64,000 nucleotides of DNA from Macrostomum hystrix (taxonomy: Eukaryota > Animalia > Platyhelminthes). The notes beneath the pieces are model-generated. The model was not told where the DNA came from and ran no database searches. It saw nothing but the letters and a program-made list of their open reading frames with translations. Position 1 is the first letter of the stretch. Each line of letters opens with the position of its first letter. Below are positions 1 to 55,000 of the stretch, piece by piece. The DNA lies in contig CATNEN010000001.1 in NCBI GenBank assembly GCA_950097015.1, positions 9,858,001 to 9,922,000 of the forward strand, given 5' to 3'. Made by a program: the position numbers and the translations under genes.

Positions 1-250
1 TCTAATGGGATCTCATACCATCCATCTCTAATGGGATCTCATACCATCCATCTCTAAAGGGATCTCATCCCATCCATCTCTAATGGGATCTCATCCCATC
101 CATCTCTAATGGGATCTCATACCATCCATCTCTAAAGGGATCTCATACCATCCATCTCTAATGGGATCTCATACCATCCATCTCTAATGGGATCTCATAC
201 CATCCATCTCTAAAGGGATCTCATACCATCCATCTCTAAAGGGATCTCAT
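1..250. repeat. 26-bp minisatellite (tctaatgggatctcataccatccatc)
   Basis: About 9 tandem copies, truncated by the window edge. Confidence 0.95.
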
Positions 251-1028
251 CCCTCCCAGCACATCCTCACATGTAATTATCATCCCCGTGGCCAATTTAA
301 TTCCGTCCAGTCGTCATTCATGCACAAACTTTATTTTAAAATACAATTGTCATCTATAATTTATTGATGTATACGAGCCCGTAGATGTCTCGTCTGTTAT
401 TTAATTTTAACAATAACTATCTATAGTAATTTCTGATTTTTTCAGATTTTATTATTTTTTCTCGCTGCAATTAAAGTTGCAAAAACTATCTGGAGCTGCA
501 ACTGCCTCATAACAAGAGGCAGAAAATAAAAAAGGATATTCCTGACGTTTTTTCACTCTTTTGCGTTTTTATTCTTTGAAAACCATTCACACTCTACTGT
601 TAGTAGACGATCGAACCATTCCGTTGCCTAAGCGGACTATAAAATAATTAAAAAATCGAAGCCAAGAATCGGACCAAGATCAGCCCTCTGCAGAAGCCTT
701 TGTAGTCTTATTTAAATTACTTTTTAGATGACAAAGGAGTTCGTTCATATCGTCGGTAATTATCAAACTATATTTTAAGAGTACTTTTCAGCACCAACGA
801 GTAAGTCTCGCTAAATAGAACGAACGAATTCCGACTTATAGTAGTATGTAAAAATTCACACAAAATCGACTCCATATGATATAAACAGTAGTTGAAAGAT
901 ACGAGCATTGTAGACTATTAATTCAGCTTCGTCGTGATTTTAATAATCTGCGAATGCAAATTAAATTGTTATCGAGGTAATCGAGCGTCAAAAAAATATT
1001 TGTGAAAATAATTTGCGAGTAAAAAGGT

Positions 1029-1099
1029 TGCATCGGCCGGGAATCGAACCCGGGCCGCCCGCGTGGCAGGCGAGCATTCTACCACTGAACCACCGATGC
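1029..1099 (-). tRNA. tRNA-Gly(GCC)
   Basis: Reverse complement GCATCGGTGGTTCAGTGGTAGAATGCTCGCCTGCCACGCGGGCGGCCCGGGTTCGATTCCCGGCCGATGCA; canonical 71-nt cloverleaf; T-run terminator at 1021-1025. Confidence 0.98.
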
Positions 1100-1792
1100 T
1101 TAGACTAAGTGTGTTAACTGAAGTATTTAAATAGCCTTTACCTGGTATCAGTGCGGCCTAATTGGCTGCCCATTTTCGTTGTGATAAAAGCTGCTGAGGT
1201 CGAGGAGCCTTCGAAAATGCACACTTACTAAAGCCATACAGTCAAGGTTTTCAGGCTGTGTCTTGCTTTCTGTCTCCCGGCAGCCAGACAATAGGAATGG
1301 AAGAAATTTTTAGTCAGCTGAATTTTAGTCATGCTCGGGGCTGCAGGCTGCAGCAGCAAATTGTGAAATTGCGAGCACGATAAAATGGTTTGAGAAGCTT
1401 GCTCAGCTTCGATACTATTTTTCTTTCTTGCCTCGTCTTGAGCAGGGTAAAGTGGTCGTTGTTAAGAGAGTGACGCGGTCGGATTGCTGCTTCATTGTCA
1501 GCTATCAGCTACAAATATGAAGACTTGAATGCGTCAATACAGCACTATTTTATTATTAGACTAAACTCGAAAGCTGAAAAATTAAAAATAGGACCAATTT
1601 AAAAAGTTGTCACTGTCGTCCTTATCCATGGCGTCTTCTAGAAGCCGTTCACCTTCGACCTCAGCCAGCTCATCTCGCATTATTTTGTCATCTCGCGGGT
1701 CCGGTAAATATTAATTAGAATGTTTAGCTTGTGATGTTTTAGAAAATCTCATTGATAGATAATAATGTTCAGGATGCTTCCCTGTGCCGCAA

Positions 1793-1863
1793 GCATCGGT
1801 GGTTCAGTGGTAGAATGCTCGCCTGCCACGCGGGCGGCCCGGGTTCGATTCCCGGCCGATGCA
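1793..1863 (+). tRNA. tRNA-Gly(GCC)
   Basis: Same 71-nt sequence as the 1029-1099 copy; T7 Pol III terminator at about 1870-1876. Confidence 0.98.
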
Positions 1864-2085
1864 ATTCAGTTTTTTTCGTTAGTGTTAATCAGTCTATGAT
1901 TTTACACAAAATAATACACAATTTTTTCCTAAAATGTGACCTCTGCCAAGTCCTTGACTTTAGTGAAGAAGTTTTAATAAAGTTTAACCTTTACTGGCTA
2001 TGGTCCTATGGATGATCTGTTGAAGGGCACATAAATTTCAACACCCAACACATTGTCCCATGTAAACATGTATTTATTCACACAG

Positions 2086-5000
2086 GTCGCATTTTAACCA
2101 GCGTTTCGTGTCAAGTTTGCGGCGACTACAGCAGCGGCAAGCATTACGGCATATATGCTTGCGACGGGTGAGTTGATTGTTAGTGTGTTGTCATGGCTAC
2201 GAGCTCTATATTTACTCAGTAGTGTTAATAAACACACCATTAAAAATATTCTTCCAACCTCCCGCAGCTGCGCCGGATTCTTTAAGCGATCGGTGCGCAG
2301 ACAGCACAAGTACACCTGTAAAGCGCTGGCCAATCAGGATTCGTCGGGCACGTCAGGAGAAGGCAGTGGCAATGCTGTCATTGGCAGCTGCCCGATAGAC
2401 AGAAATCAGAGAAATCAGTGTCGCTACTGTCGCATGAATACCTGCTTAAAAGCTGGCATGAGTACAGATGGTGAGTACAGTCCTGATTTAGTCTAGCAGC
2501 TGATGAGGTGTAGTTCTAGTTTCAGTCTAACAGCTGATGAGGTGTTCTAGTTTCAGTCTAACAGCTGATGAGGTGTCCTAGTTTCAGTCTAGCAGCTGAT
2601 GAGGTGTAGTTCTAGTTTCAGTCTAACAGCTGATGAGGTGTTCTAGTTTCAGTCTAACAGCTGATGAGGTGTTCTAGTTTCAGTCTAGCAGCTAATGAGG
2701 TGTAGTTCTAGTTTCAGTCTAACAGCTGATGAGGTGTTCTAGTTTCAGTCTAGCAGCTGATGAGGTGTAGTTCTAGTTTCAGTCTAACAGCTGATGAGGT
2801 GTCCTAGTTTCAGTCTAACAGCTGATGAGGTGTCCTAGTTTCAGTCTAACAGCTGATGAGGTGTTCTAGTTTCAGTCTAACAGCTGATGAGGTGTCCTAG
2901 TTTCAGTCTAGCAGCTGATGAGGTGTAGTTCTAGTTTCAGTCTAACAGCTGATGAGGTGTTCTAGTTTCAGTCTAACAGCTGATGAGGTGTTCTAGTTTC
3001 AGTCTAGCAGCTGATGAGGTGTAGTTCTAGTTTCAGTCTAACAGCTGATGAGGTGTTCTAGTTTCAGTCTAACAGCTGATGAGGTGTTCTAGTTTCAGTC
3101 TAACAGCTGATGAGGTGTCCTAGTTTCAGTCTAGCAGCTGATGAGGTGTAGTTCTAGTTTCAGTCTAACAGCTGATGAGGTGTTCTAGTTTCAGTCTAGC
3201 AGCTGATGAGGTGTAGTTCTAGTTTCAGTCTAACAGCCGATGAGGTGTAGTTCTAGTTTCAGTCTAACAGCTGATGAGGTGTTCTAGTTTCAGTCTAACA
3301 GCTGATGAGGTGTAGTTCTAGTTTCAGTCTAACAGCTGATGAGGTGTAGTTCTAGTTTCAGTCTAACAGCTGATGAGGTGTAGTTCTAGTTTCAGTCTAA
3401 CAGCTGATGAGGTGTAGTTCTAGTTTCAGTCTAACAGCTGATAAGGTGTTCTAGTTTCAGTCTAACAGCTGATGAGGTGTAGTTCTAGTTTCAGTCTAAC
3501 AGCTGATGAGGTGTAGTTCTAGTTTCAGTCTAGCAGCTGATGAGGTGTTCTAGTTTCAGTCTAACAGCTGATGAGGTGTTCTAGTTTCAGTCTAGCAGCT
3601 GATGAGGTGTAGTTCTAGTTTCAGTCTAACAGCTGATGAGGTGTTCTAGTTTCAGTCTAGCAGCTGATGAGGTGTTCTAGTTTCATGTCAGCCAGAGTTT
3701 TTTTGTGTCAAACTTGGCTTTAAACAACGGCTATTTATTTGTGCCGTAGCACGTACATCGGACATTATGTAGGCCAAATACTCGTACAAACAATGACCCT
3801 TTTACGACCCCGTTCCATTCTGCGCAGATTGGACACGTGTTGCTTTGTCATCTGAAATAATACAATATGCTACCTTAAGAACAAGATGCAGGGATGAACG
3901 CTGAGAAAAAGTTGTTTATAAGTCAAACTCATGCAGCGTGGCTTCTGTATTAAAGCAGTTTGCACCGGTCGGCTCATGAAATTCTCTCTCTTCTTCTCTT
4001 TGTTCTTCTGTTCTCAATAGTCGACTCAAATGGAGCTAAAAAGTCACTCACAATAGTTAAGACTTGTCGACGACTCGTTAGAGTTGAATAAAAAAGATTG
4101 CACAGACTAAGACTCATTGTAGCTAGATCTGGCAAAGATTGATTCTATAAAAATTAAACTCACTGCTGAGGTAAAAAAGACAGGTTAGCATTTAGAAGGA
4201 ATTGTGACGATGACTGGCAAGACAGATTTCGTCAAGTGAGCCCCAGGAACGCTACCAAAATGAGGCGAACCTCAACGCACACTCTACAATGGAAATAATA
4301 GTCCTGCTATTTGGAGTTTAGAGACCATTTTATTATTCGTCACAAGATTGCTAACCTGGTGTGTTCTTTCCGATACTTAAGAAGCCGTTTTATATAAAAC
4401 TGTCTATAGTGATGAGGCACCAAAAAAAGAAAGATAAACGCGGTAAAGAGACTTTATGGAGCCTCACAATTGGATGGCGAAATTTACGAATTAAACTTTT
4501 TTCGGACAGCTCACAAGTTAATTGTGAGGGTACTAGTCGAAATTGCCCTATTGGAATCGATAAGTTTACACTTGCATAACGCACTTATAGGGATGAAAAT
4601 ATTTCTAACTTGATAAAATGTCATGTGTCTCATTTGTTTCAGGTGTGTCTTATTTGGTTCAGAGGTCTCGTTTGATTCAGAGGTGTCCCATTTGTTTCAG
4701 GTGTGTCTTATTTGGTTCAGAGGTCTCGTTTGATTCAGAGGTGTCTCGTTTGGTTCAGAGGTGTCCCATTTGTTTCAGGTGTGTCTTATTTGGTTCAGAG
4801 GTCTCGTTTGATTCAGAGGTGTCTCGTTTGGTTCAGGTTTGTCTTATTTGGTTCACAGGTCTCGTTTGATTCAGAGGTGTCTCATTTGTTTCAGAGGTGT
4901 CTCGTTTGATTCAGAGGTGTCTCATTTGGTTCTGAGGTGTCGCATTTGGTTCAGAGGTGTCTAATTTGGTTCAGAGGTGTCTCGTTTGATTCAGAGGTGT

Positions 5001-43830: not shown

Positions 43831-46800
43831 TCTCAAGAAATTCTAGATCGACCATTATAATATAACAATTTAAAAATGTATATAAAATAATTTAAAATAA
43901 AAAAATATAATAAATTAGTCTTCAGTTTAAAAAAAACAGATTGACCTTTAAATACTATAGTCGACCCTCAAATACTCGTAACTCTAATAACTCAACAATA
44001 ATATTTGACTATAGGCCGATATACTTGTAGTAGAAAAAATTCACTTCAGGGACTCCATAGCCAGCTAAAGGCACTCTGCTGACGGCGTCGGGCTGGTGAC
44101 TGATTGGTAGACAGGCTAGGCGAGGCTAAGTCCTATAGTTGAACTTCGTCCCATATTGAAGCTTGATCAGCGTATAGGGAGAAATTTGCATCAGTGTCCG
44201 TATTCGGCTGGTGCCACTTGTTGAAGGTCCAGTAGCACCGTTTAGATAAAGTTGCTTGACCACCGAAGTCGGAGATGATGCATGCACATCCGGGTGATGT
44301 GCTGATTAAGTTTGAAGGCCAGTCAAGGCCGCACTGAGGCGCAGTGCGAATACTTGTATAGGGTATGAAATAAACTCGCCCTTGCTGTAAAAATCTGACG
44401 TTCTGCCAGAACTAATGAAGATCTCGATCGATTCACGCTCGTAGTTTCGCGCCTCCCGTACTGCATTTCTTTCATTAATTATTTAGTCGTCTGAATACAG
44501 TGAAAGATTGCGTTGTTTTTCTTGTAGTTGGAAATATTATAAATAACAATGAGCGGTTATGCATGAGGCTGAAATCCTTAACTGTTACTTATGGTTAAAG
44601 TGTCCTGTGCTAATGTTAATTCTTTTTGGACTTATTACTGTACCGTTAATTACTGCTTACAGCGAAATACGATTCTGATTATCTTATTGTTTGCGCAAAA
44701 AAAATAAAAAATTAATTTGACTGTGTTAGCGAAATGTTTTCTATCTTAATATTCTACTTCTGATAGCTCTACTATTCTATATAAATAACACTTTATTTGT
44801 AAAACGACTGCGGGTGTCCATGTCGCCGCTTGTCCGAAGCTTCGGGCGTACACCTCTTCCCCTTCGTCAAAGGACCGGTGTTTTGAACTCCCATCATGTT
44901 GCTGTTTCTGCTTCTCTTGGCGACTGAGAACTCGTTTTGTGATGTCTGGCCGAGCATGATCCAAGAGCGAACGCAGTGTGCGGCCCATCAGGAGCTGGCA
45001 GGGTGCCACGCCCGTCGTCGAGTGAGGTGTGATGCGATAGCTCATTAGGAAGCGGGCAACTTGCGTCTCGAGCGAGCCGTCTGACTGTTTTGCGATTGAG
45101 CGCTTTAAGCTCTGCACCGCCCTTTCTGCGAGTCCGTTCGACGCTGGGTGGTACGGCGGGGTGCGGACGTGACGAATAGCATTACGGCGGCAAAACTCAC
45201 CGAATTCGCCACTCGAGAAGCACGGTCCGTTGTCAGTCACCACGACGTCCGGGAGCCCGTGTGTGCAGAAGCTTTGGCGCAGTTTCTCGGCTGTAGTCGA
45301 TGCGGTCGCTGAAGAAGTGACGTGAACATCGAGCCACTTTAAGTAGGCATCCACGACGATTAGTAGCATCTTATCTCGAACTGGTCCGGCGTAGTCCACG
45401 TGTAGGCGAGACCATGGGCGCGAAGGCAGAGGCCACGGTTGTAGTGGTGCGGGTGAAGACTCCCTCTGATTTTTTCTGACAAACCGCACAGGCGGCGACC
45501 ATCGACTCGATCTCCTGGTCCATACCCGGCCACCATATGTAACTGCGGGCTAGCGATTTCATTCGAGAAGAACCTGGATGGCTTTGGTGAAGACACTGGA
45601 GCATTTTAGCACGACCTGCTTTAGGAATGATGATGCGGCTGACCCAAAAGACACCCATCTTGAACTGAAAGCTCCTTCGATCGGCGGGCATACTGTTGTA
45701 GCTCCGGGGTTGTAGCAATAGGCCAGCCAGATAGGCAGAATTGCACCACCTGCGACAACTCTGGGTCACGTCTGGTCCAAGTGCGAACGTCTTCTAAACT
45801 AACGGGTCCTGAACCGAGACAGTCCATCAGCAGAACAATCTCTGCAGGCACGGGGGTCGACCAGTCCGCAGTTGGAGTCGGGAGACGGCTAAGGGCATCC
45901 GCCCTAAGGAGCGAGGAGCCGCTGCGATGTACTAGCCTGTACTGGTAAGCCGAAAGTAGCAGCGCCCACCGCTGAATTCGGCCTGAAGCCATGGGTGGAA
46001 TCGACTTGCATTCCCCTAGGAGTCCGAGCAGAGGTCGAGGGTCCGTCAGCAGGTTGAACTTGCGACCCAGGAGGTACTGGTTGAATTTCTTGACACCGTA
46101 AACTAGTGCCAGCGCCTCCTTCTCCAGCTGACAATACTTCCGCTCCGCTGTACTCAAAGTCCTGGACGCGTAAGCAACTGGCTTGTCTAGGCCATCTAAT
46201 CGATGGAAGATGACAGCTCCGATTCCAAATTCTGATGCGTCACATTCGAGGAAGAGTTCCGCTTCTGCGTTGTAATGAGCCAGGACGTTAGGCTGCGTCA
46301 AAAGACGCTTGCAAGCCTCAAAGGCCTCTTGTTGCGACTGGTGCCATTGCCAGGTGGCTCCCTTGTTCAGCAGCTGATGAAGGGGACTGAGCACTGTTGA
46401 CAAATTCGGAAAAAACTTCCCATAATAATTCACTAGACCGAGAAAACTCGGCAGCTGCGTCAGGTCTTTAGGCTCCGGCGCGTTGACGATAGCTTGGACC
46501 TTGTCGTCCAGTGGATGTAGACCTTCCGCATCAATGCGATGCCCAAGGTACACCACGGAGTCCTGCATGAATGCGCACTTGTTCTGGCTGCAATTCAAGC
46601 CGGCATCTTTGAACACAGAGAACACGGCCCGCAGGTTATTTACGTGGTGCTCGTCATCGGTGCCAGTGACGTCGTCCATGAAAGCTGCGCAGTGGTCGAT
46701 GCCGTGCAGAAGGCTGTCCATGACTCTCTCAAACATGCTTGGCGCTGTTGACACACCAAACGGGAGTCTCGAATAGCGGAGCAGTCCCAGCGAGGTGTTG

Positions 46801-47452
46801 ATGGTACACAACTTTTGAGCCTCATCGTCAAGTGGCAACTGGCTGAAGGCCTGGCTCAAATCAAGCTTGCTGAACTTCTTACCTCCGGCCAGTCTTGAAA
46901 AAAGCTCATCGATATTTGGCAAAGGATAAGTATCGGCGTTGATTGAAGCGTTGAGGATCTGCTTAAAATCGGCGCAGACTCGAATACTACCATCCGCCTT
47001 CATCACTGGGACAATTGGAGACGCCCAGTCAGAGGTCTTGACGGGATACAGCACTCCTTGCTGCACCTCTTTATTTAGCTGCTTCTCAACATTGACCTTC
47101 AGAGAGAATGGAACAGGCCGTGCCTTGAAAAACCGCGGCTTGGCGTCTGGCTTCAAATGACAGCGGCTTGCCTTTGTAGGTACCCAGATAGCCGAAAACG
47201 TCAGCGAATTCGATCAGCAGTCCTTGCACCTTAGTGTCGACGGACTTCAGCTGCTTGATGGACTGCCAGTCAAGTGGTAGCTGCTGCAGCCAATCACGTC
47301 CCAGAGGACTTGGACCACTGCCCTCCACGACCAGCAGGCTGAGTTTGACGTGCTCACCTGAGGGTGATTTGCTGACAGGCAACTCTAGTTTACCAAGGAC
47401 TCTAACCGAATGACCCGAGTAAGTGTGTGTGTGTGTTGGTTCAGATCCCTCG

Positions 47453-50400
47453 CTAGGCATACGGGGGGCGCGCCAGCGCGCCCGACGCCTCGACGAAGGC
47501 CCGCACCCCTTCTGGGTCGTTCTGCAGTGGGGACATAGAGCCGTTGATAGCCTCTGGGATGTGAAGCCGGCGCTCCTCCGCCCACCTGGGGCAGTCTAAC
47601 AGGAAATGCCGGGTGTCTTCTTCGGGGGGCATTGCAGTGCGGGCAGGCAGCGGTTGGGTCGCGGCCCCAACGATGCCGGGTGGCCTGCAGGAAGGGCGCC
47701 CGGTTGGCCCGAAGCTGGTACAGCGCCACCTCGGCCGTCCGCGGCCAGCCTGGCCGGTGGATGAACTGCGCTCCGCCGCAGAGCCTGTGGGGGTGGTCCG
47801 CCGGAACTAGCTGATTATACTCAGCCAATTCGGCCGCTCGTCCCTGGCGACGGAGGGCGGCCCTGGCGGCCGACACGGGGACAGGCTGGGGGTCTTGCTG
47901 CATGGCGGACCCTCTCCGGGCCAGCTCATCGGCGGCCTCGTTAAGCGCAAGGCCTGCATGCCCTGGGATCCAGATGACCGTTGGCCTGTGCTCGCTGGCC
48001 AGCTGTTGGAGCAGGATCGCGGCTTGCGCGGTGGCGTGGTCTTGCAGGCACTTGGTCGAGGACTGCAGCCGCTGGAACAGGGCTCGTGAGTCGAACAGCA
48101 GCCAGATCGCCGAGCTCGGCTTCCCCCGAAGGAGACCGAGGGCTGCCTCGAGCCCCGCCGCCGCCGCGGCCGCTTCTGAAGTGGTCGAACTGGTCCACCG
48201 TCCGGTCGGGATACTGCCCTTGACGTCGGGGCCGATAGCATTACGCCGGATGATGTAGCCTCCACCGCCATTTCTGAAGCCTTCTTCCGCCGCCCCGTCT
48301 GTCCAGACTTCGAGGTACGGCGGGTCGCTCCGGCGAAGGGAGTCCAGCAGTTCTAAGGCCCTCGCGCGTCGGACCTCCGGGGGCTCCTCGCGCCCAGCAT
48401 CCGCCGCAGCGAAGCGGGCCGAGTGATGAGGGGTCCACGGCCGGTGCAGGCAGGAGAGCGGAACGCACCCCTCAATGTTCCGAGCGTGACATCCCGCCTC
48501 CTCCAGGGCCGCAAGCGCCGTCTCTCTCCAGCACCCGCGGGTCCCGCCCCCTCTCGACCGCAGTCTCGTCGTGTTCGGCGGGGCGTCGGTTAGCTTCCGC
48601 AGCGGGTGGCCCTCGCTGAACTGGCGGCATCGCAGGTAGAGCTCAGCCGCCCGAATCCGGCAAATGATGTCCAGGGGCTGTAGCCCGGCGTCCGCGATCA
48701 GCGCAGCAGCCCGGGCACCGGGACTGACACCGGTGATGGCCCGGGCCGCGGCGTAATTCATCGACTCCAACCGCTCCCGGTGGGTACGAGCCAGAAAAGG
48801 CCACCACACCTCCGCCGCGTACAGCCCCGCCGGGCGAACGTAGCCGCAGTAGAGCCGACGAAGCGTATCAGCGTCAGCTCCCCACCGGCGGGAAGCCACA
48901 GCCCGCAGGGCGTTGAGCCGGCTCCGCATGGCAGCCAGCGCGCGACGGGCCTGCTCGGCGAAGGTGACCTGGGAGTCCACGAACACCCCCAGGATGCGCG
49001 CCTCCTTCCGGCAGCTGATCGTCTGCCCACCGACCTGGAGCTGAACAGAGTTGCGGAAGGCCTCGGTATTCTCCACGGGATGGGTACTCACCAGCAGGGC
49101 CTCGGTCTTGTTTGGGGCCAGTTCGAAGTGATGCTGCTGGCACCAGGTTTCTGCCGCTTCCAGCGCTTGTTGCATGTTCTCCGCCGCTGCCGCCGCAGTG
49201 CCCGCCGACGTCTTGATGGACAGGTCATCGGCGTATTGCAGCGGCTTACAGAGCGGGGCGGCGGACTGGATGGCGTCTGGCAGGGTACAGGTCGCAATGT
49301 TGAATAGCAGCGGGGACAACGGACTGCCTTGCGGGACTCCCTCCTTCAGGATCTTGGGCCGGCTCATGCTATCAACCCAGCGCACTCGAGCTCTCCGGTC
49401 AGCCAGAAACGCGCGGATCCAGCGCAGCCACCGTCCCGGGGCGCTCGCTCGAGCCAGTTGCCGCAGCACCCCGAGGCGCCAGGTTCGGTCAAAAGCAGCG
49501 AAGAAGTCGATCGCTGCCACCAGGGTCCTCGTCATCGGCCGCGTCTGCAGGTCGTCAAAGGCCGGCTGGGCCAGCTGCGCTAGGGCGTCAACCGTGCTGC
49601 GGCTGGCGCGAAACCCGGACTGCGCGTCCGGGAGCAGGCCGATCTCCTCCGCCCAGGCCGCCAGCCTGCGCTGCACCATCGCTTCTAACGTCTTCCCGAC
49701 ACAGCTGAGCAGCGAGACAGGTCGGAAGGATGCCGGGTCGCTCTTGGGCTTGCCCTTCTTGGCAATGGGCGTGATGATGGCCGTGCGCCAGCCCGATGGA
49801 ACCTTGCCCTCCAACCAGCTCCGGTTGAGCAGGGAGAGCAGGGCGACCCGTCCGATCGACGGGAGGTTTTGAAGAAAAGCCGGGAGAACTCCGTCTTGAC
49901 CCGGCGCCTTCCCCTCGATCTCCCTCAGAACGACGTCCAGCTCTGCCAGGTGGAACGGGGTGGACCGCAGGTCGTCCGTCTCGTTCTGCAGAGCGCGGCG
50001 GACCTCCCTCCTGGCAGCCTGCTGATCTGTCTTCGGAACGCGGAGTCGGCTTGCCTCCGCATAGGTCGCCATCGCCATGTCTGCCTTCTCCCGGTCAGAG
50101 GTCGCGGTCTTGTTGCCCTTGCGGAGCGGGGTGTCAGGGAGCGGCTCATGCGCTCGGCCATCGAGGGCCCTGATGGTGTTCCAGACCTTGTTGTCTGGGG
50201 ACCTGGCCGACAGCTCCGCGACGAAACCTTGCCAGGACTCGGTCTTCGCCTGTTGGTACACTCGGTCGGCTTGGTCGCGGGCAGCGCGGTACCTCGCTTC
50301 CAAGTCCCCTGGCGCGGCTCTGGCTGCCGCTAAGGCGCCGCGAGTGGCGCCCTGGGCCCGTCTGCATCGCTCGTCCCACCAGCTCTTGGCCTTCTTAACT

Positions 50401-51401
50401 CTGCCCTTGGGGATGCAGCTCGCCGCGTCCAGGATCCTGCGGCAGAAGTCTGCATTGGCGGCCTCCACGGACCGAAAGCCGTCCGCCGACCAGCCCAGGA
50501 AAAAATCACCCGCCCGCGTCGCGTAGGTCGGCCAGTCCGCCCGTCGCAGGTTGAAGCCAGCTGGGCGGCGTCGCTCATGGGTTTGGGTGAAGGCGATGGT
50601 CAGCAGCAGAGGAAGGTGGTCCGACCCCATGGTGTCCCCCACGCGCCAGCTGATCCGGCTGGACCAGACAGCACTGCAGAGCGACACGTCGGGCGCCGAC
50701 TCACCACCCCCCGGGCTCACTCTAGTGGCACTGCCGTCGTTGAGCGCCATCCAGCCGTGGTCGCTCAGCCAATCGTCGAGCTCGCTTCCAGGGGGGTCCG
50801 GATCAGCATTCGGGTCCCAGCTACCGTGAGCGTTGAGGTCGCCCATCAGCAGCCAGTGCCCATCGGTGGGCCAGCCGTTGGTGTGTCGGGCCCCGTCTCG
50901 GTCGTCCGCGTCGGAGTGCCGTACAGGTGGGCGGTAGAGGTTGGTGAGGTGCAGCGGCTTGGACTTGTCCCCGAACAGACGGATGGTCAGCTGCTCCAGG
51001 GCCGCGTTGACGGGGGTCCGCAGACCCGCCTCCACCTCTTCATGGGCCAGGCCTTGTTTGACCAGAGTGAGCAGGCCTCCATGGTGACCGCCACCCCCCC
51101 GGTGGACGACCCGGTCGCGGCGGTGGACGGTGTAACCGCGGAGCTTGGGTGTGGGCTCTCTCTCGGTGAGGTTAGATTCCTGCAGAAGGGCGATGTCTAT
51201 TTTGTTTTCCTCCAGCAGCCGTTCAAGTGCCGGTCGACGCGCCTGTAGCCCGTTGAGGTTCCACTGCAGGACACGGAGATCGGCCTGGATAGGACCGGGG
51301 TTCGGCTCAACATCCCCCGACAACAGAACCCGGCGGCGAGACCAGTCGGGGTTGGCCTGCCACCCTCCCAAAAACCCGCCAGCGGGTTGGGGTGCGGACA
51401 T
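47453..51401 (-). CDS. LINE polyprotein: 2A-like peptide + APE endonuclease + RT + RNase H + CCHC finger (one +1 frameshift near 47625)
   Basis: APE: QWNLNGL, LLQES, MGDLNAH, PDVS, SDHLP. RT: QSGFR, GVPQGSPLSP, YADD. RNase H: WTDG, WIPGHAG, NEAADELA. Removing one C from a C6 run restores CPHCNAPEEDTRHFLLDCPRW...PPYA*. Confidence 0.92.
51291..51317 (-). other. 2A-like ribosomal skipping (StopGo) motif GDVEPNPG|P
   Basis: LLSGDVEPNPGP matches the D(V/I)ExNPGP consensus and lies immediately before the APE domain. Confidence 0.85.
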
Positions 51402-51421
51402 CGAAGCGACATCCGGGGAGC

Positions 51422-51489
51422 CGGAGCATTTGGCACAGAACGCATCTGTGACACCTGTCCCCACGTGAAGGGAGCTCCGTTTGACAGGC
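51422..51489 (-). ncRNA. HDV-like (CPEB3-type) self-cleaving ribozyme at the LINE 5' end
   Basis: P1 GCCUGUC/GACAGGU with G1-U wobble; J1/2 AAA; P2 CGGAGC/GCUCCG; P3 CCC/GGG; L3 UUCACGU; J1/4 GU; P4 CACAGA/UCUGUG; J4/2 CCAAAU; G+1 abuts the TSD. Confidence 0.9.
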
Positions 51490-52950
51490 ACCCGAGTAAG
51501 TCGTCAGCTGAGCTGCAGACGGGCTGAGAGACGGTGAACCGTGTAGGACAGTCTTGAAGGTGCGCTCTGATACTAGAGACACGGACGCGCCTGTGTCGAT
51601 TTCCATCAGACATGGGTGACCTCCGATGTAGACCGTCGTAGTGATGGGTGGCACGCTTTTGCTGGCTGGGGTCGCCGAGCCCAGTTGATGCAGGCAGTAC
51701 GACTCCTGATCTGGCCCTGGCACTGTCTGCTGCTCCTCAAGAACTTGATTGGCCACGTGCTGATGTTGTTTCCTGCAAGCCCTGGCAGTGTGTCCAGTTC
51801 TCCGGCACTTGAAACATTCCTTATTGATGAACGGGCACTTCTGGTGGTGATGTTTCGATGACAAGCATCTGCCACATTTCTTGTGCTCAGATGGCTTTGT
51901 CTGCTGAATCTTCAGGACAGAATTTTCGCCCTTGCCTTCCTCTGAGCTTCCAGAGGCTGCTTCAAAAAGCTTGCTGTTGCTCATAGCTGATTCGTGAGCC
52001 AAAGCAATTTCCGTGGCCGTCTTCAGTTGCAGCTTTGACTCCGAGAGCAACCGCGCTGAATCTGCAGGTCGTTGATGCCGCACACAAGCCGGTCTCGCAG
52101 CATGTCGTCGAGGCTGTTACCATAGTTGCAGTGCTCACTTAGCTTCCGCAGTTCTGCCAGGTAGGTTGATACCGACTCGCCCAGCTTCCGAATACTGTTG
52201 TTGAAATTGAATCGCTGAACAATCTCGGACGGCTTGGGGCAGTAGTGGTTCTTGAGCAACTCGCACACTCTGAATAGCTTTTCTCTGCGACTTTCGATGG
52301 TGAGCACAGATTCCGAGCAATTTGAAACGCCTGACGACCGCAAACGCTGAGTAGCACGGCCCTCTTCTTTTCTTCTGAGCTGACGCCTTGAGCTTCAAAG
52401 TACTGTTCTAGACGTTCCTGGTACTCCGTCCAGCTCTCCTCTTTCTCATCGAAAGCCTCAAAAGCATGGGTTGTTGCTGACATCCTCGTCGCCAGTGAAA
52501 CAACTTGATTTACGATTGAGCTAGCCAAAAGGTCCGAACGCGACAGGACCAAAGTAAGGTTAATATATATTGTTTAACGAAGTGAAATAGAGCGAACAAA
52601 TAACAATCGATATAGCGAAGGAATAAAATAATACCGTTTACATTGAAGCATGTACACGCACATGTACATTAAGTATTGTACGCAGAGAACAGAATACAGA
52701 GTGCGCGCACACAACGAAAATAAAACTTTGACGCAGCCACCCCAAAACGCCACGCAGCGTGAAGCCAAAGCCTCACCCCACCACACCATGTAAATGCATT
52801 GGTGGATTCTGCCGCAGGGAAAGCCGTGGCAGTTCCGGGGAGGTCCAGGCGGATTTGTTAAAAATAGAATCAAGGGTAGTGTTTTTATCGTTAAGAGAGT
52901 ATTTATTTAAGACTAATAGGCATTTCGTCACGGAAGTTTGACCTGCTACC

Positions 52951-53403: not shown

Positions 53404-53947
53404 TGAGGATGCGGACGACGAGAAGACGCTGCTGATTTCCGAGTCAGACAACGCAACCTCCGAACCGCTTCCAGCTGCAGCCCAACTGTCGACGCCCAAA
53501 GCATTCGGCTGCATCCCACAGCGGTACCGGCCCGTGCGGCTGCGGGTCTCAGTGTCAACTGCTTGATCGGAAGCCGCAAGCGCAAGCGGCTATAGCCTCT
53601 GCGTAGGAGCGATGCGATCAAGTTTCCGAAGCTGACGGACGACTCAGATGAAAACAAGGACAACGAGTGAATTTCCAAGTGACAGTACATGCATCAAATA
53701 ATTTCTAAATTCATTCATTTGGTCAAATGCGCACTAAGCTTATTATCTATCCAGCCATATTTCAGCAATATAGGCTACAGTGTAATTTTGCTCTGTGCTT
53801 CTCGCAAAGCTAATTTAACTGTCTTTTTTGGTTTTATTGCTCGGTATATGTATCAAGACATTTTATAAACTAGATTGTGTCAATACAACTTAAGAAAGTT
53901 GCTAAAGACAAATAATATTGATTCTGACATCCTCTTCATGTTGGAAA

Positions 53948-55000
53948 ATGGAAAAGCTTTACTACAATCCCGCTCAGCCGGCCAGTTTCTCAGGTGCATC
54001 AAAGTTGCAGCGGCAACTAGGGAAAAATAATGAGGGGAAATCTAGAAAATACATTGAGCTGTGGTTAACTGAACAGCCCGTGCACACACTACACAGGTCG
54101 GCTAGAAGGCGCTATCCCAGAGCACCAATCATAGTGAGAGCGATAGATGACCAGTGGGAGCTTGACCTGGTCGAGATGATCCCATTCGCCAAGTACAACA
54201 AAGGCTACAAGTACATCCTCACATGCATTGACGTGTTGTCTAAATCAGCATGGGCCAAGCCGTTAAAGAACAAATCAGCTGCAGAAGTAAAGTCTGCATT
54301 CGAGAGCATTTTGAGATGCTCAAAGCGCCAGCCTCGCACAGTCCGCACAGATCAGGGAAAAGAATTCATCAACAATTTTAGGCAGGTCTGCATACAGCGG
54401 GGAATCCTGGCCTTCAAAACTAACAGTGAGCAGAAAGCTGCAGTAATTGAGCGATGGAACAGAACTTTGAAGAGTAAGATGTGGAAATATTTCACTCACA
54501 AGAGCACAGTGCTCTGGATTGATGTGCTGCCTAAGCTGGTGAAATCATACAACAATACTTACCACAGAAGCATCAAAATGGCACCGACAAGTGTCTGCAA
54601 ACAGAATGAGTCTGAGGTGTGGATGAATCTGTACGATGGAAAGGCAATTGAGACTGTACAGGGACCCAAGAAGCCGAAGTTCTGTGAGAATTTCAAATGC
54701 ACCCAGGCTGTTCCGAAAGGGTTACAAGGCCAACTGGAGCGAGGAGGTATACACTGTAGTGTGCAGGGCACCAAAGCACTACCCGTACATGTACAAGATC
54801 CGAGACATGAAGGGTGAGGAGATTCGCGGACTCTCACGAGTATGAGCTGCAGGCTGTTCCGGACTCACAGCGGCTGTATATATGTCATTGAGAAGGTTTT
54901 GAAGTCAGAAAAGCGCAATGGGAAAATCCGCTATCTTGTCAAGTGGGCTGGCTACAACTCCACAGGCTGGGTGGATGAAAAGGACTTAAAAAAGGTTAGA
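53948..55000 (+). pseudogene. Maverick c-integrase with C-terminal chromodomain, frameshifted
   Basis: LYYNPAQPASFSG, WELDLVEM, CIDVLSK, RTDQGKEF, IERWNRTLK, YNNTYHRSIKMAP, FRKGYKANWSEEVY, IEKVLK...YLVKWAGY. Confidence 0.9.

Follow-up and report, generated by a model that had tools for sequence, protein, structure and literature searches.

The first 68 nt of a full-length LINE (a non-LTR retrotransposon) are highly likely to be a genuine HDV-like (delta-fold) self-cleaving ribozyme, which very probably cuts the element's transcript back to precisely its first base. The LINE lies on the minus strand of the window, by which we mean the whole 64-kb stretch of DNA analysed here. An earlier note on this DNA had read the segment as the 5' HDV-like ribozyme of a full-length LINE and had proposed self-cleavage. 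That interpretation as a whole is supported, since the fold, the coincidence of the first base with the target-site duplication (TSD) and the identity of the element as a full-length LINE all hold, and other copies in the genome agree. Throughout, element nt n corresponds to window position 51490-n. Features are collected in Table 1.

Table 1. Positions of the element, its host, the ribozyme helices and related loci (window positions unless a contig is given)
Feature	Position	Strand	Remarks
LINE (non-LTR retrotransposon)	51489 to 47424	-	4,066 bp; ribozyme is the first 68 nt
TSD, 5' copy, TTACTCGGGT	51490..51499	-	12 bp possible with ambiguous AC at 51501-51500
TSD, 3' copy, TTACTCGGGT	47413..47422	-	follows (CA)n tail
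(CA)n 3' tail	47424..47436	-	
Single LINE ORF	47453..51488	-	stop of the intact frame at 47455-47453
2A-like StopGo motif DVEPNPGP	51291..51314	-	codons 59-66 of the frame open from nt 2
APE (PF03372/PF14529)	about 50607-51269	-	Pfam
RT (PF00078)	about 49050-49748	-	Pfam
RNase H (PF00075)	about 47907-48314	-	Pfam
C-run with one extra C	47624..47629	-	relative to the intact C41 copy and contigs of four public runs
Host LTR retrotransposon	44746..52552	-	gag-like ORFs, retropepsin DTGA, RT, RT_RNaseH_2, integrase
HDV-like ribozyme (predicted)	51422..51489	-	element nt 1-68; predicted scissile bond between 51490 and 51489
P1, 5' strand (nt 1-7)	51483..51489	-	G1 at 51489; pairs with nt 31-37
P1, 3' strand (nt 31-37)	51453..51459	-	U37 at 51453, partner of G1
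P2, 5' strand (nt 11-16)	51474..51479	-	pairs with nt 63-68
P2, 3' strand (nt 63-68)	51422..51427	-	six Watson-Crick pairs in P2
P3 (nt 18-20 with 28-30, CCC/GGG)	51460..51472	-	3 bp; encloses L3
J1/4 GU (nt 38-39)	51451..51452	-	
P4 stem-loop (nt 40-56)	51434..51450	-	nt 40-45 with 51-56, 6 bp
J4/2 CCAAAU (nt 57-62)	51428..51433	-	first base C57 at 51433, then CAAAU
Conserved hairpin just 3' of the ribozyme (nt 75-95)	51395..51415	-	9 bp; holds the lineage-A AUG at 51401-51399
Family C locus L028	C7:12965379-12965450	-	
Family C locus L029	C39:4710882-4710953	-	
Family C locus L031	C39:17510199-17510270	-	

The 5' end of the LINE can be placed to the base. TTACTCGGGT is found at 51499-51490 and again at 47422-47413, so that G1 (51489) directly adjoins the TSD, as had been claimed. 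The single ORF encodes APE, RT and RNase H domains; directly 5' of the APE lies a 2A-type motif (GDVEPNPGP), whose last codon is codon 66. The LINE splits its host, an LTR retrotransposon of the same orientation, within the protease. Excising the LINE together with one TSD copy gives a continuous retropepsin frame (…IDTGASV…LTTYSG/HSVRVLG…, with the slash at the joint), and the RT, RT_RNaseH_2 and integrase of that retrotransposon follow downstream on the same strand. Another copy of the LINE, on C41, sits within a related LTR retrotransposon, in its RNase H region (LECDAS motif). Elsewhere in the window, a 299-codon ORF at 53918-54817 on the plus strand lies in AT-richer DNA and by eye resembles a DDE/integrase-type transposase (...DQGKEF...).

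Read directly, minus-strand positions 51489-51422 are exactly the 68 nt quoted earlier. They make up a canonical HDV-like nested double pseudoknot with its parts in canonical order and sizes (P1-J1/2-P2-P3-L3-P3'-P1'-J1/4-P4-J4/2-P2'), and the fold originally described, a 7-bp P1 with a G1-U wobble, P2, P3, P4 and a C/A-containing J4/2, is present in full. P1 has seven pairs and is closed by the G1·U37 wobble, while L3 is the 7-nt UUCACGU (nt 21-27). By its position, which matches the catalytic C of HDV, C57 (51433) in J4/2 is a candidate general-acid cytosine. C23 (51467) in L3 can pair with G38 as a proposed P1.1; a second P1.1 pair beside it would be U·U. The nested minimum-energy structure from RNAfold contains P2, P3 and P4. 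Its z-score of -1.7 leaves the pseudoknotted P1 unscored and understates the fold, because RNAfold cannot score pseudoknots. Bases -1 to -3 of the window copy (U, G, G) could lengthen P1 by U·G, G·U and G-C pairs, and such a lengthening could compete with P1.1 and interfere with cleavage; P1 extension reduces the activity of the L1Tc and R2 ribozymes (PMC3185411).

How easily such an arrangement arises by accident was gauged with a strict HDV-like descriptor of our own. It demands a P1 of 7 bp whose first pair is G·U, a P3 of three Watson-Crick pairs, an L3 of 7-8 nt of the form U-N-C, a G after P1, a P4 of at least 4 bp followed by C, a J4/2 of 3-8 nt and a P2 of 5 bp or more. Run over the two strands of the 64-kb window, it matches once, at 51489 on the minus strand. 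In 120 first-order Markov sequences of 128 kb it matched twice, about 0.017 per 128 kb, and the count was 2 of 120 with either the window or the element as training sequence. The chance of a match landing on the one base that adjoins the TSD is of the order of 1e-7.

Searches with curated family models gave a different kind of answer. The check with HDV and CPEB3 covariance models that the earlier note had proposed returned nothing, even at E≤10. Across the 5 kb, the 91-nt stretch and five sister loci that we scanned, no HDV-type model in Rfam (HDV_ribozyme, CPEB3_ribozyme, drz-Agam and others) matched at that threshold, and the scans gave just chance miRNA and sRNA matches with E above 1. By sequence, this speaks against placing the predicted ribozyme in any curated sequence family, that of CPEB3 among them. 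HDV-like ribozymes have little sequence in common between lineages, and Rfam models do not score the pseudoknot, so the absent matches do not count against the fold. One metagenome scan with a strict core pattern found no cross-species homologue: all eight loci recovered were chance matches with neither P1 nor P2, and several of them were bacterial contigs of gut metagenomes.

Further copies were sought in the organism's own 220-Mb assembly, by BLAST of the 5' region and by two covariance-model searches, and about 21 loci were recovered; the second of these models (R2) yielded no additional members. The window copy belongs to a lineage, A, that also includes copies on C2, C41, C33, C32, C35 and C8. 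These are 82-100% identical and all start at the same base, with unrelated DNA upstream. In four full-length copies in which both ends were located (window, C2, C41 and C33), different TSDs of 10-12 bp abut G1. Compared with lineage A, lineage B is about 73% identical in the DNA of the 5' region and about 65% identical in protein, and it ends in a (CAA)n tail where lineage A has (CA)n. Its G1 start is seen at six loci with six different flanks, and TSDs abut G1 in two full-length copies. The TSD therefore lies directly against G1 in six independent full-length insertions from two lineages.

The earlier note had expected other genomic copies to share this 5' end and to keep the pairings. In lineages A and B the start base G1 is common and the pairings are kept by compensatory changes. 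A more distant family, C (L028, L029 and L031), shares the ribozyme core and starts 33 nt further 5'. Its additional 33 nt form two hairpins before GGUC, the last four bases of the 5' strand of P1, a split-P1 arrangement in which the P1 pairs are kept in colinear register at five of seven positions. Lineages A and B behave as the earlier note's test for refutation required, and family C, with its hairpins set into P1, is a qualification.

The paired columns were compared with a control in which the 3' partners were slid by 1-3 columns. In a MAFFT alignment of nine sequences, 93.4% of pair cells held standard pairs, against 35-53% when slid. A larger alignment of 14 distinct genomic sequences was built with a covariance model of P1, P3 and P4 only, and here 90.3% of cells were paired, against 37.6-53.0% when slid. 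Both sides had changed in 11 of the 23 pairs (four in P1, three in P2 and four in P4), counts drawn from related copies within one genome, which may stand for some three to five independent lineages. In 500 column shuffles, neither the fraction of paired cells nor the count of double-change pairs nor the covariation score ever came up to its observed value. Since P2 was left out of the covariance model, its pairing is an unfitted test; it was 94% paired across the 14 sequences, with three compensatory positions.

Individual positions show the same behaviour. Four of the seven P1 pairs changed on both sides, with position 2 being C-G, U-A or U·G and position 4 U-A, C-G or G-C across the copies. 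Position 2 of P4 is A-U or G-C, and position 1 of P2 is C-G or G-C. The first P1 pair is G·U in 8 of 14 sequences and G-C in 2 of 14. P3 and the C23-G38 pair (C-G in 12 of 13 sequences, with no covariation) are invariant and hence uninformative in this respect. The candidate catalytic C is a C in 13 of 14 sequences, the exception being a decayed copy in which P3 is also broken. In J1/4, G38 is present in all 14 sequences and U39 in 13.

Taken alone, some of these results would fit a chance arrangement of complementary segments within GC-rich coding sequence: the z-score of the nested part is just -1.7, and the simulated rate predicts tens of descriptor matches per 220-Mb genome. That reading does not explain why the match sits at the single base adjoining the TSD, why two lineages with different tails use the same start base, or why three helices carry compensatory changes at values that 0 of 500 shuffles equal. 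With G1 against the TSD in lineages A and B and the covariation besides, we consider chance effectively refuted, and scarcely credible as an explanation.

The sister lineages also bear on kinship with the CPEB3 ribozyme, to which the earlier note had compared L3 and J1/4. The two ribozymes are similar in overall length and have the J1/4 sequence in common, and both are compact delta folds. Lineage A also has an L3, UUCACGU, identical to that of CPEB3; the mouse Cpeb3 ribozyme contains TTCACGT about 18 nt from its cleavage site (primer in PMC10919898). The L3 part of the comparison is thereby confirmed. True descent from a common ancestor with the mammalian ribozyme is nonetheless very improbable. 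In sister lineages L3 is UUCCCGA, UUCCCGC or UUCUCGU, which limits the constraint to UUCNCG, and the Rfam CPEB3_ribozyme model gave no match at E≤10 on the 91-nt stretch. The settings differ too, the mammalian ribozyme being intronic and single-copy in its host gene whereas this one forms the 5' end of a LINE. On its sequence, the likeness is one of resemblance and not of family membership.

The LINE family is recently active, as indicated by the presence of 100%-identical copies in the genome and by additional insertion flanks in read contigs. At the 3' junction (47423), low-depth contigs of four small runs from one study show at least four flanks unlike that of the window, and no RNA ends; one of these flanks matches the C2 copy, and the others are other or polymorphic insertions. 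The family is young, and its activity probably continues. About ten young 3' ends were counted against four young full-length copies, the usual LINE pattern of 5' truncation, as expected. At almost every insertion of the two lineages, the element is preceded by a target ...(C)GAC and 10-12 bp are duplicated (window 51490-51505 on the minus strand; flanks L018-L027, L043 and L044). The tail, whether (CA)n or (CAA)n, shares the AC of this target, a hint at nick-site preference plus microhomology priming.

The window copy itself had been called complete. That description fits its length and both ends; its coding capacity is another matter, because a 1-nt frameshift lies near the 3' end of the ORF. 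The C41 copy has an intact ORF at element nt 2-4039 (1,346 codons), which ends after a CX2CX10HX4C knuckle. Six substitutions, a 6-nt in-frame gap and one extra C set the window copy apart from it. The extra C, in the run at 47624-47629, puts the last ~60 codons, with the knuckle, out of frame, and contigs of all four public runs (one study) do not have it. Within the ribozyme, nt 3 is U in C41 and C in the window copy, so that C3-G35 becomes U3·G35 and the pair is kept.

From these observations we infer catalysis, co-transcription and a mode of translation along the following lines. The LINE would be transcribed within a longer RNA, here possibly by read-through from the host LTR retrotransposon of the same orientation. 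The ribozyme would fold co-transcriptionally and cut the bond 5' of G1; C57 in J4/2 would serve as the general acid, and the G1·U37 wobble would hold a Mg2+ ion. Its product would be an RNA with a 5'-OH that starts exactly at G1. If that RNA is the template for target-primed reverse transcription, the TSDs of full-length copies should lie directly against G1, as they do. The processed, uncapped RNA would also be translated, its ORF being open from nt 2. The 2A StopGo sequence ~60 codons in would then discard the leader and leave an APE-RT-RNase H protein that begins at a defined proline.

A real and selected structure might also not be catalytic, or be so no longer, with the 5' end set by an internal promoter that starts at G1 and the fold serving cap-independent translation, RNA stability or binding of the element's own protein. 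In L1Tc, the 77 nt are both promoter and ribozyme, and the transcription start is the cleavage site (PMC5814959); from DNA ends alone, the two look the same. The R2 ribozyme region binds R2 protein and is thought to be IRES-like (PMC6765202). In lineages B and C the 2A motif is not preceded by any in-frame AUG, and some unconventional initiation signal must therefore sit in the leader. Against these points, what is conserved is the G1·U wobble at the end of P1, the C that opens J4/2, the GC of the proposed P1.1 and the 7-nt L3, exactly the features that delta-ribozyme chemistry needs. A role in translation or binding needs no such precise topology, and it is compatible with cleavage in any case. 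We therefore regard a structure that has no catalytic function as unlikely, and prefer a self-cleaving ribozyme.

The leader downstream of the ribozyme has features of its own. In young copies of lineages A, B and C, the frame that carries the 2A motif is open from nt 2-3. An ORF open from nt 2 might have pointed to read-in translation; we discarded that idea, since over nt 1-190 of this GC-rich leader every one of the three frames is free of stops, and openness there carries no information. Before the 2A motif there is one in-frame AUG in lineage A (codon 30, 51401-51399) and none in B or C, and the first Met 3' of the 2A site lies deep inside the APE. The lineage-A AUG is held in the hairpin just 3' of the ribozyme (nt 75-95), which is kept in lineages A, B and C and in L030. 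This hairpin was 83% paired, against 22-49% when slid, with covariation that was not significant. Over nt 70-100 the reading frame differs between A and B while the nucleotide sequence and the hairpin are retained, which suggests an RNA-level role for the segment, perhaps in translation start or protein binding. Together, the missing AUG and the kept hairpin suggest unconventional initiation, after which the leader would be removed by the 2A sequence.

HDV-like ribozymes cleave at or near the 5' ends of R2, R4/Dong, Baggins, RTE and L1Tc elements (PMC3774820, PMC3185411, PMC6765202), as the earlier note had stated for R2, L1Tc/ingi and some RTE elements. The closest architectural match is L1TcRz, or Pr77, of L1Tc (ingi clade) in Trypanosoma cruzi. 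There too the element opens with an HDV-like ribozyme some tens of nt long, whose cut lies 5' of nt +1 (PMC3185411, PMC5814959), as is predicted here. L1Tc likewise has one ORF, in which an N-terminal 2A is followed by APE, RT, RNase H and, at the C-terminus, a Cys/His motif (PMC5814959, PMC6765202), and TSDs of about 12 bp (PMC5814959). The differences are ones of detail and host: the ribozyme is 77 nt in L1Tc and 68 nt here, the tail poly(A) in L1Tc and (CA)n or (CAA)n here, the C-terminal motif two C2H2 fingers in L1Tc and a CX2CX10HX4C knuckle here, and the length 4.9 kb against 4.07 kb, in a kinetoplastid against an animal. The Ingi/L1Tc ORF layout was found in full, with the Pfam domains and 2A motif, and with the knuckle as read in the intact C41 copy. 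A protein homology search returned metagenome proteins, and a protein atlas gave just generic RT clusters and no clade, so 'Ingi-like' may be used here as a label of architecture only.

Other systems match in part. In R2, R4/Dong, Baggins and RTE, a 5' delta-fold ribozyme frees the element RNA from a co-transcript, as predicted for this LINE, and for several of these elements the cut falls precisely on the 5' junction (PMC3774820, PMC6765202). An ORF that has no conserved AUG has been discussed for R2 as well (PMC3774820, PMC6765202). R2 differs in being site-specific in 28S rDNA with a restriction-like endonuclease, in having a ribozyme of about 184 nt that often cuts upstream inside 28S sequence, and in having no 2A peptide. 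Single-ORF APE-type LINEs of animals with a 2A sequence (Ingi-1_AC of Aplysia; CR1/L2/Rex1) carry it 40-80 residues from the N-terminus, before the APE, as here (PMC3708506). In this LINE, by contrast, the 2A leader is directly 3' of a 5' ribozyme; ribozymes are not mentioned (0 occurrences) in the paper on the animal 2A-bearing LINEs (PMC3708506).

A broader reading, which we hold to be possible but on balance doubtful, is that the ribozyme, the leader that has no conserved AUG and the 2A sequence make up one conserved expression cassette of LINEs with Ingi/L1Tc architecture in kinetoplastids and animals. In such a cassette, the ribozyme and the downstream hairpin would make the exact 5' end and recruit ribosomes at a non-AUG site, and the 2A site would strip the arbitrary leader. 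If this were true, 2A would be a functional partner of 5' ribozymes and not an unrelated add-on.

The mechanism proposed here is already well known, and the present case is one more element family, with nothing new mechanistically. A literature search found no report of HDV-like ribozymes in flatworms. The LINE adds a compact 68-nt delta ribozyme with strong covariation, carried by an L1Tc-like element, in a flatworm. The parallel with L1Tc in ribozyme, 2A and APE-RT-RNase H order points to a 5' module that is either old or has come together more than once. For the genome itself, the ribozyme gives base-exact 5' ends for a young LINE family that is probably still active, and cleavage at G1 would explain why full-length copies carry no extra 5' bases.
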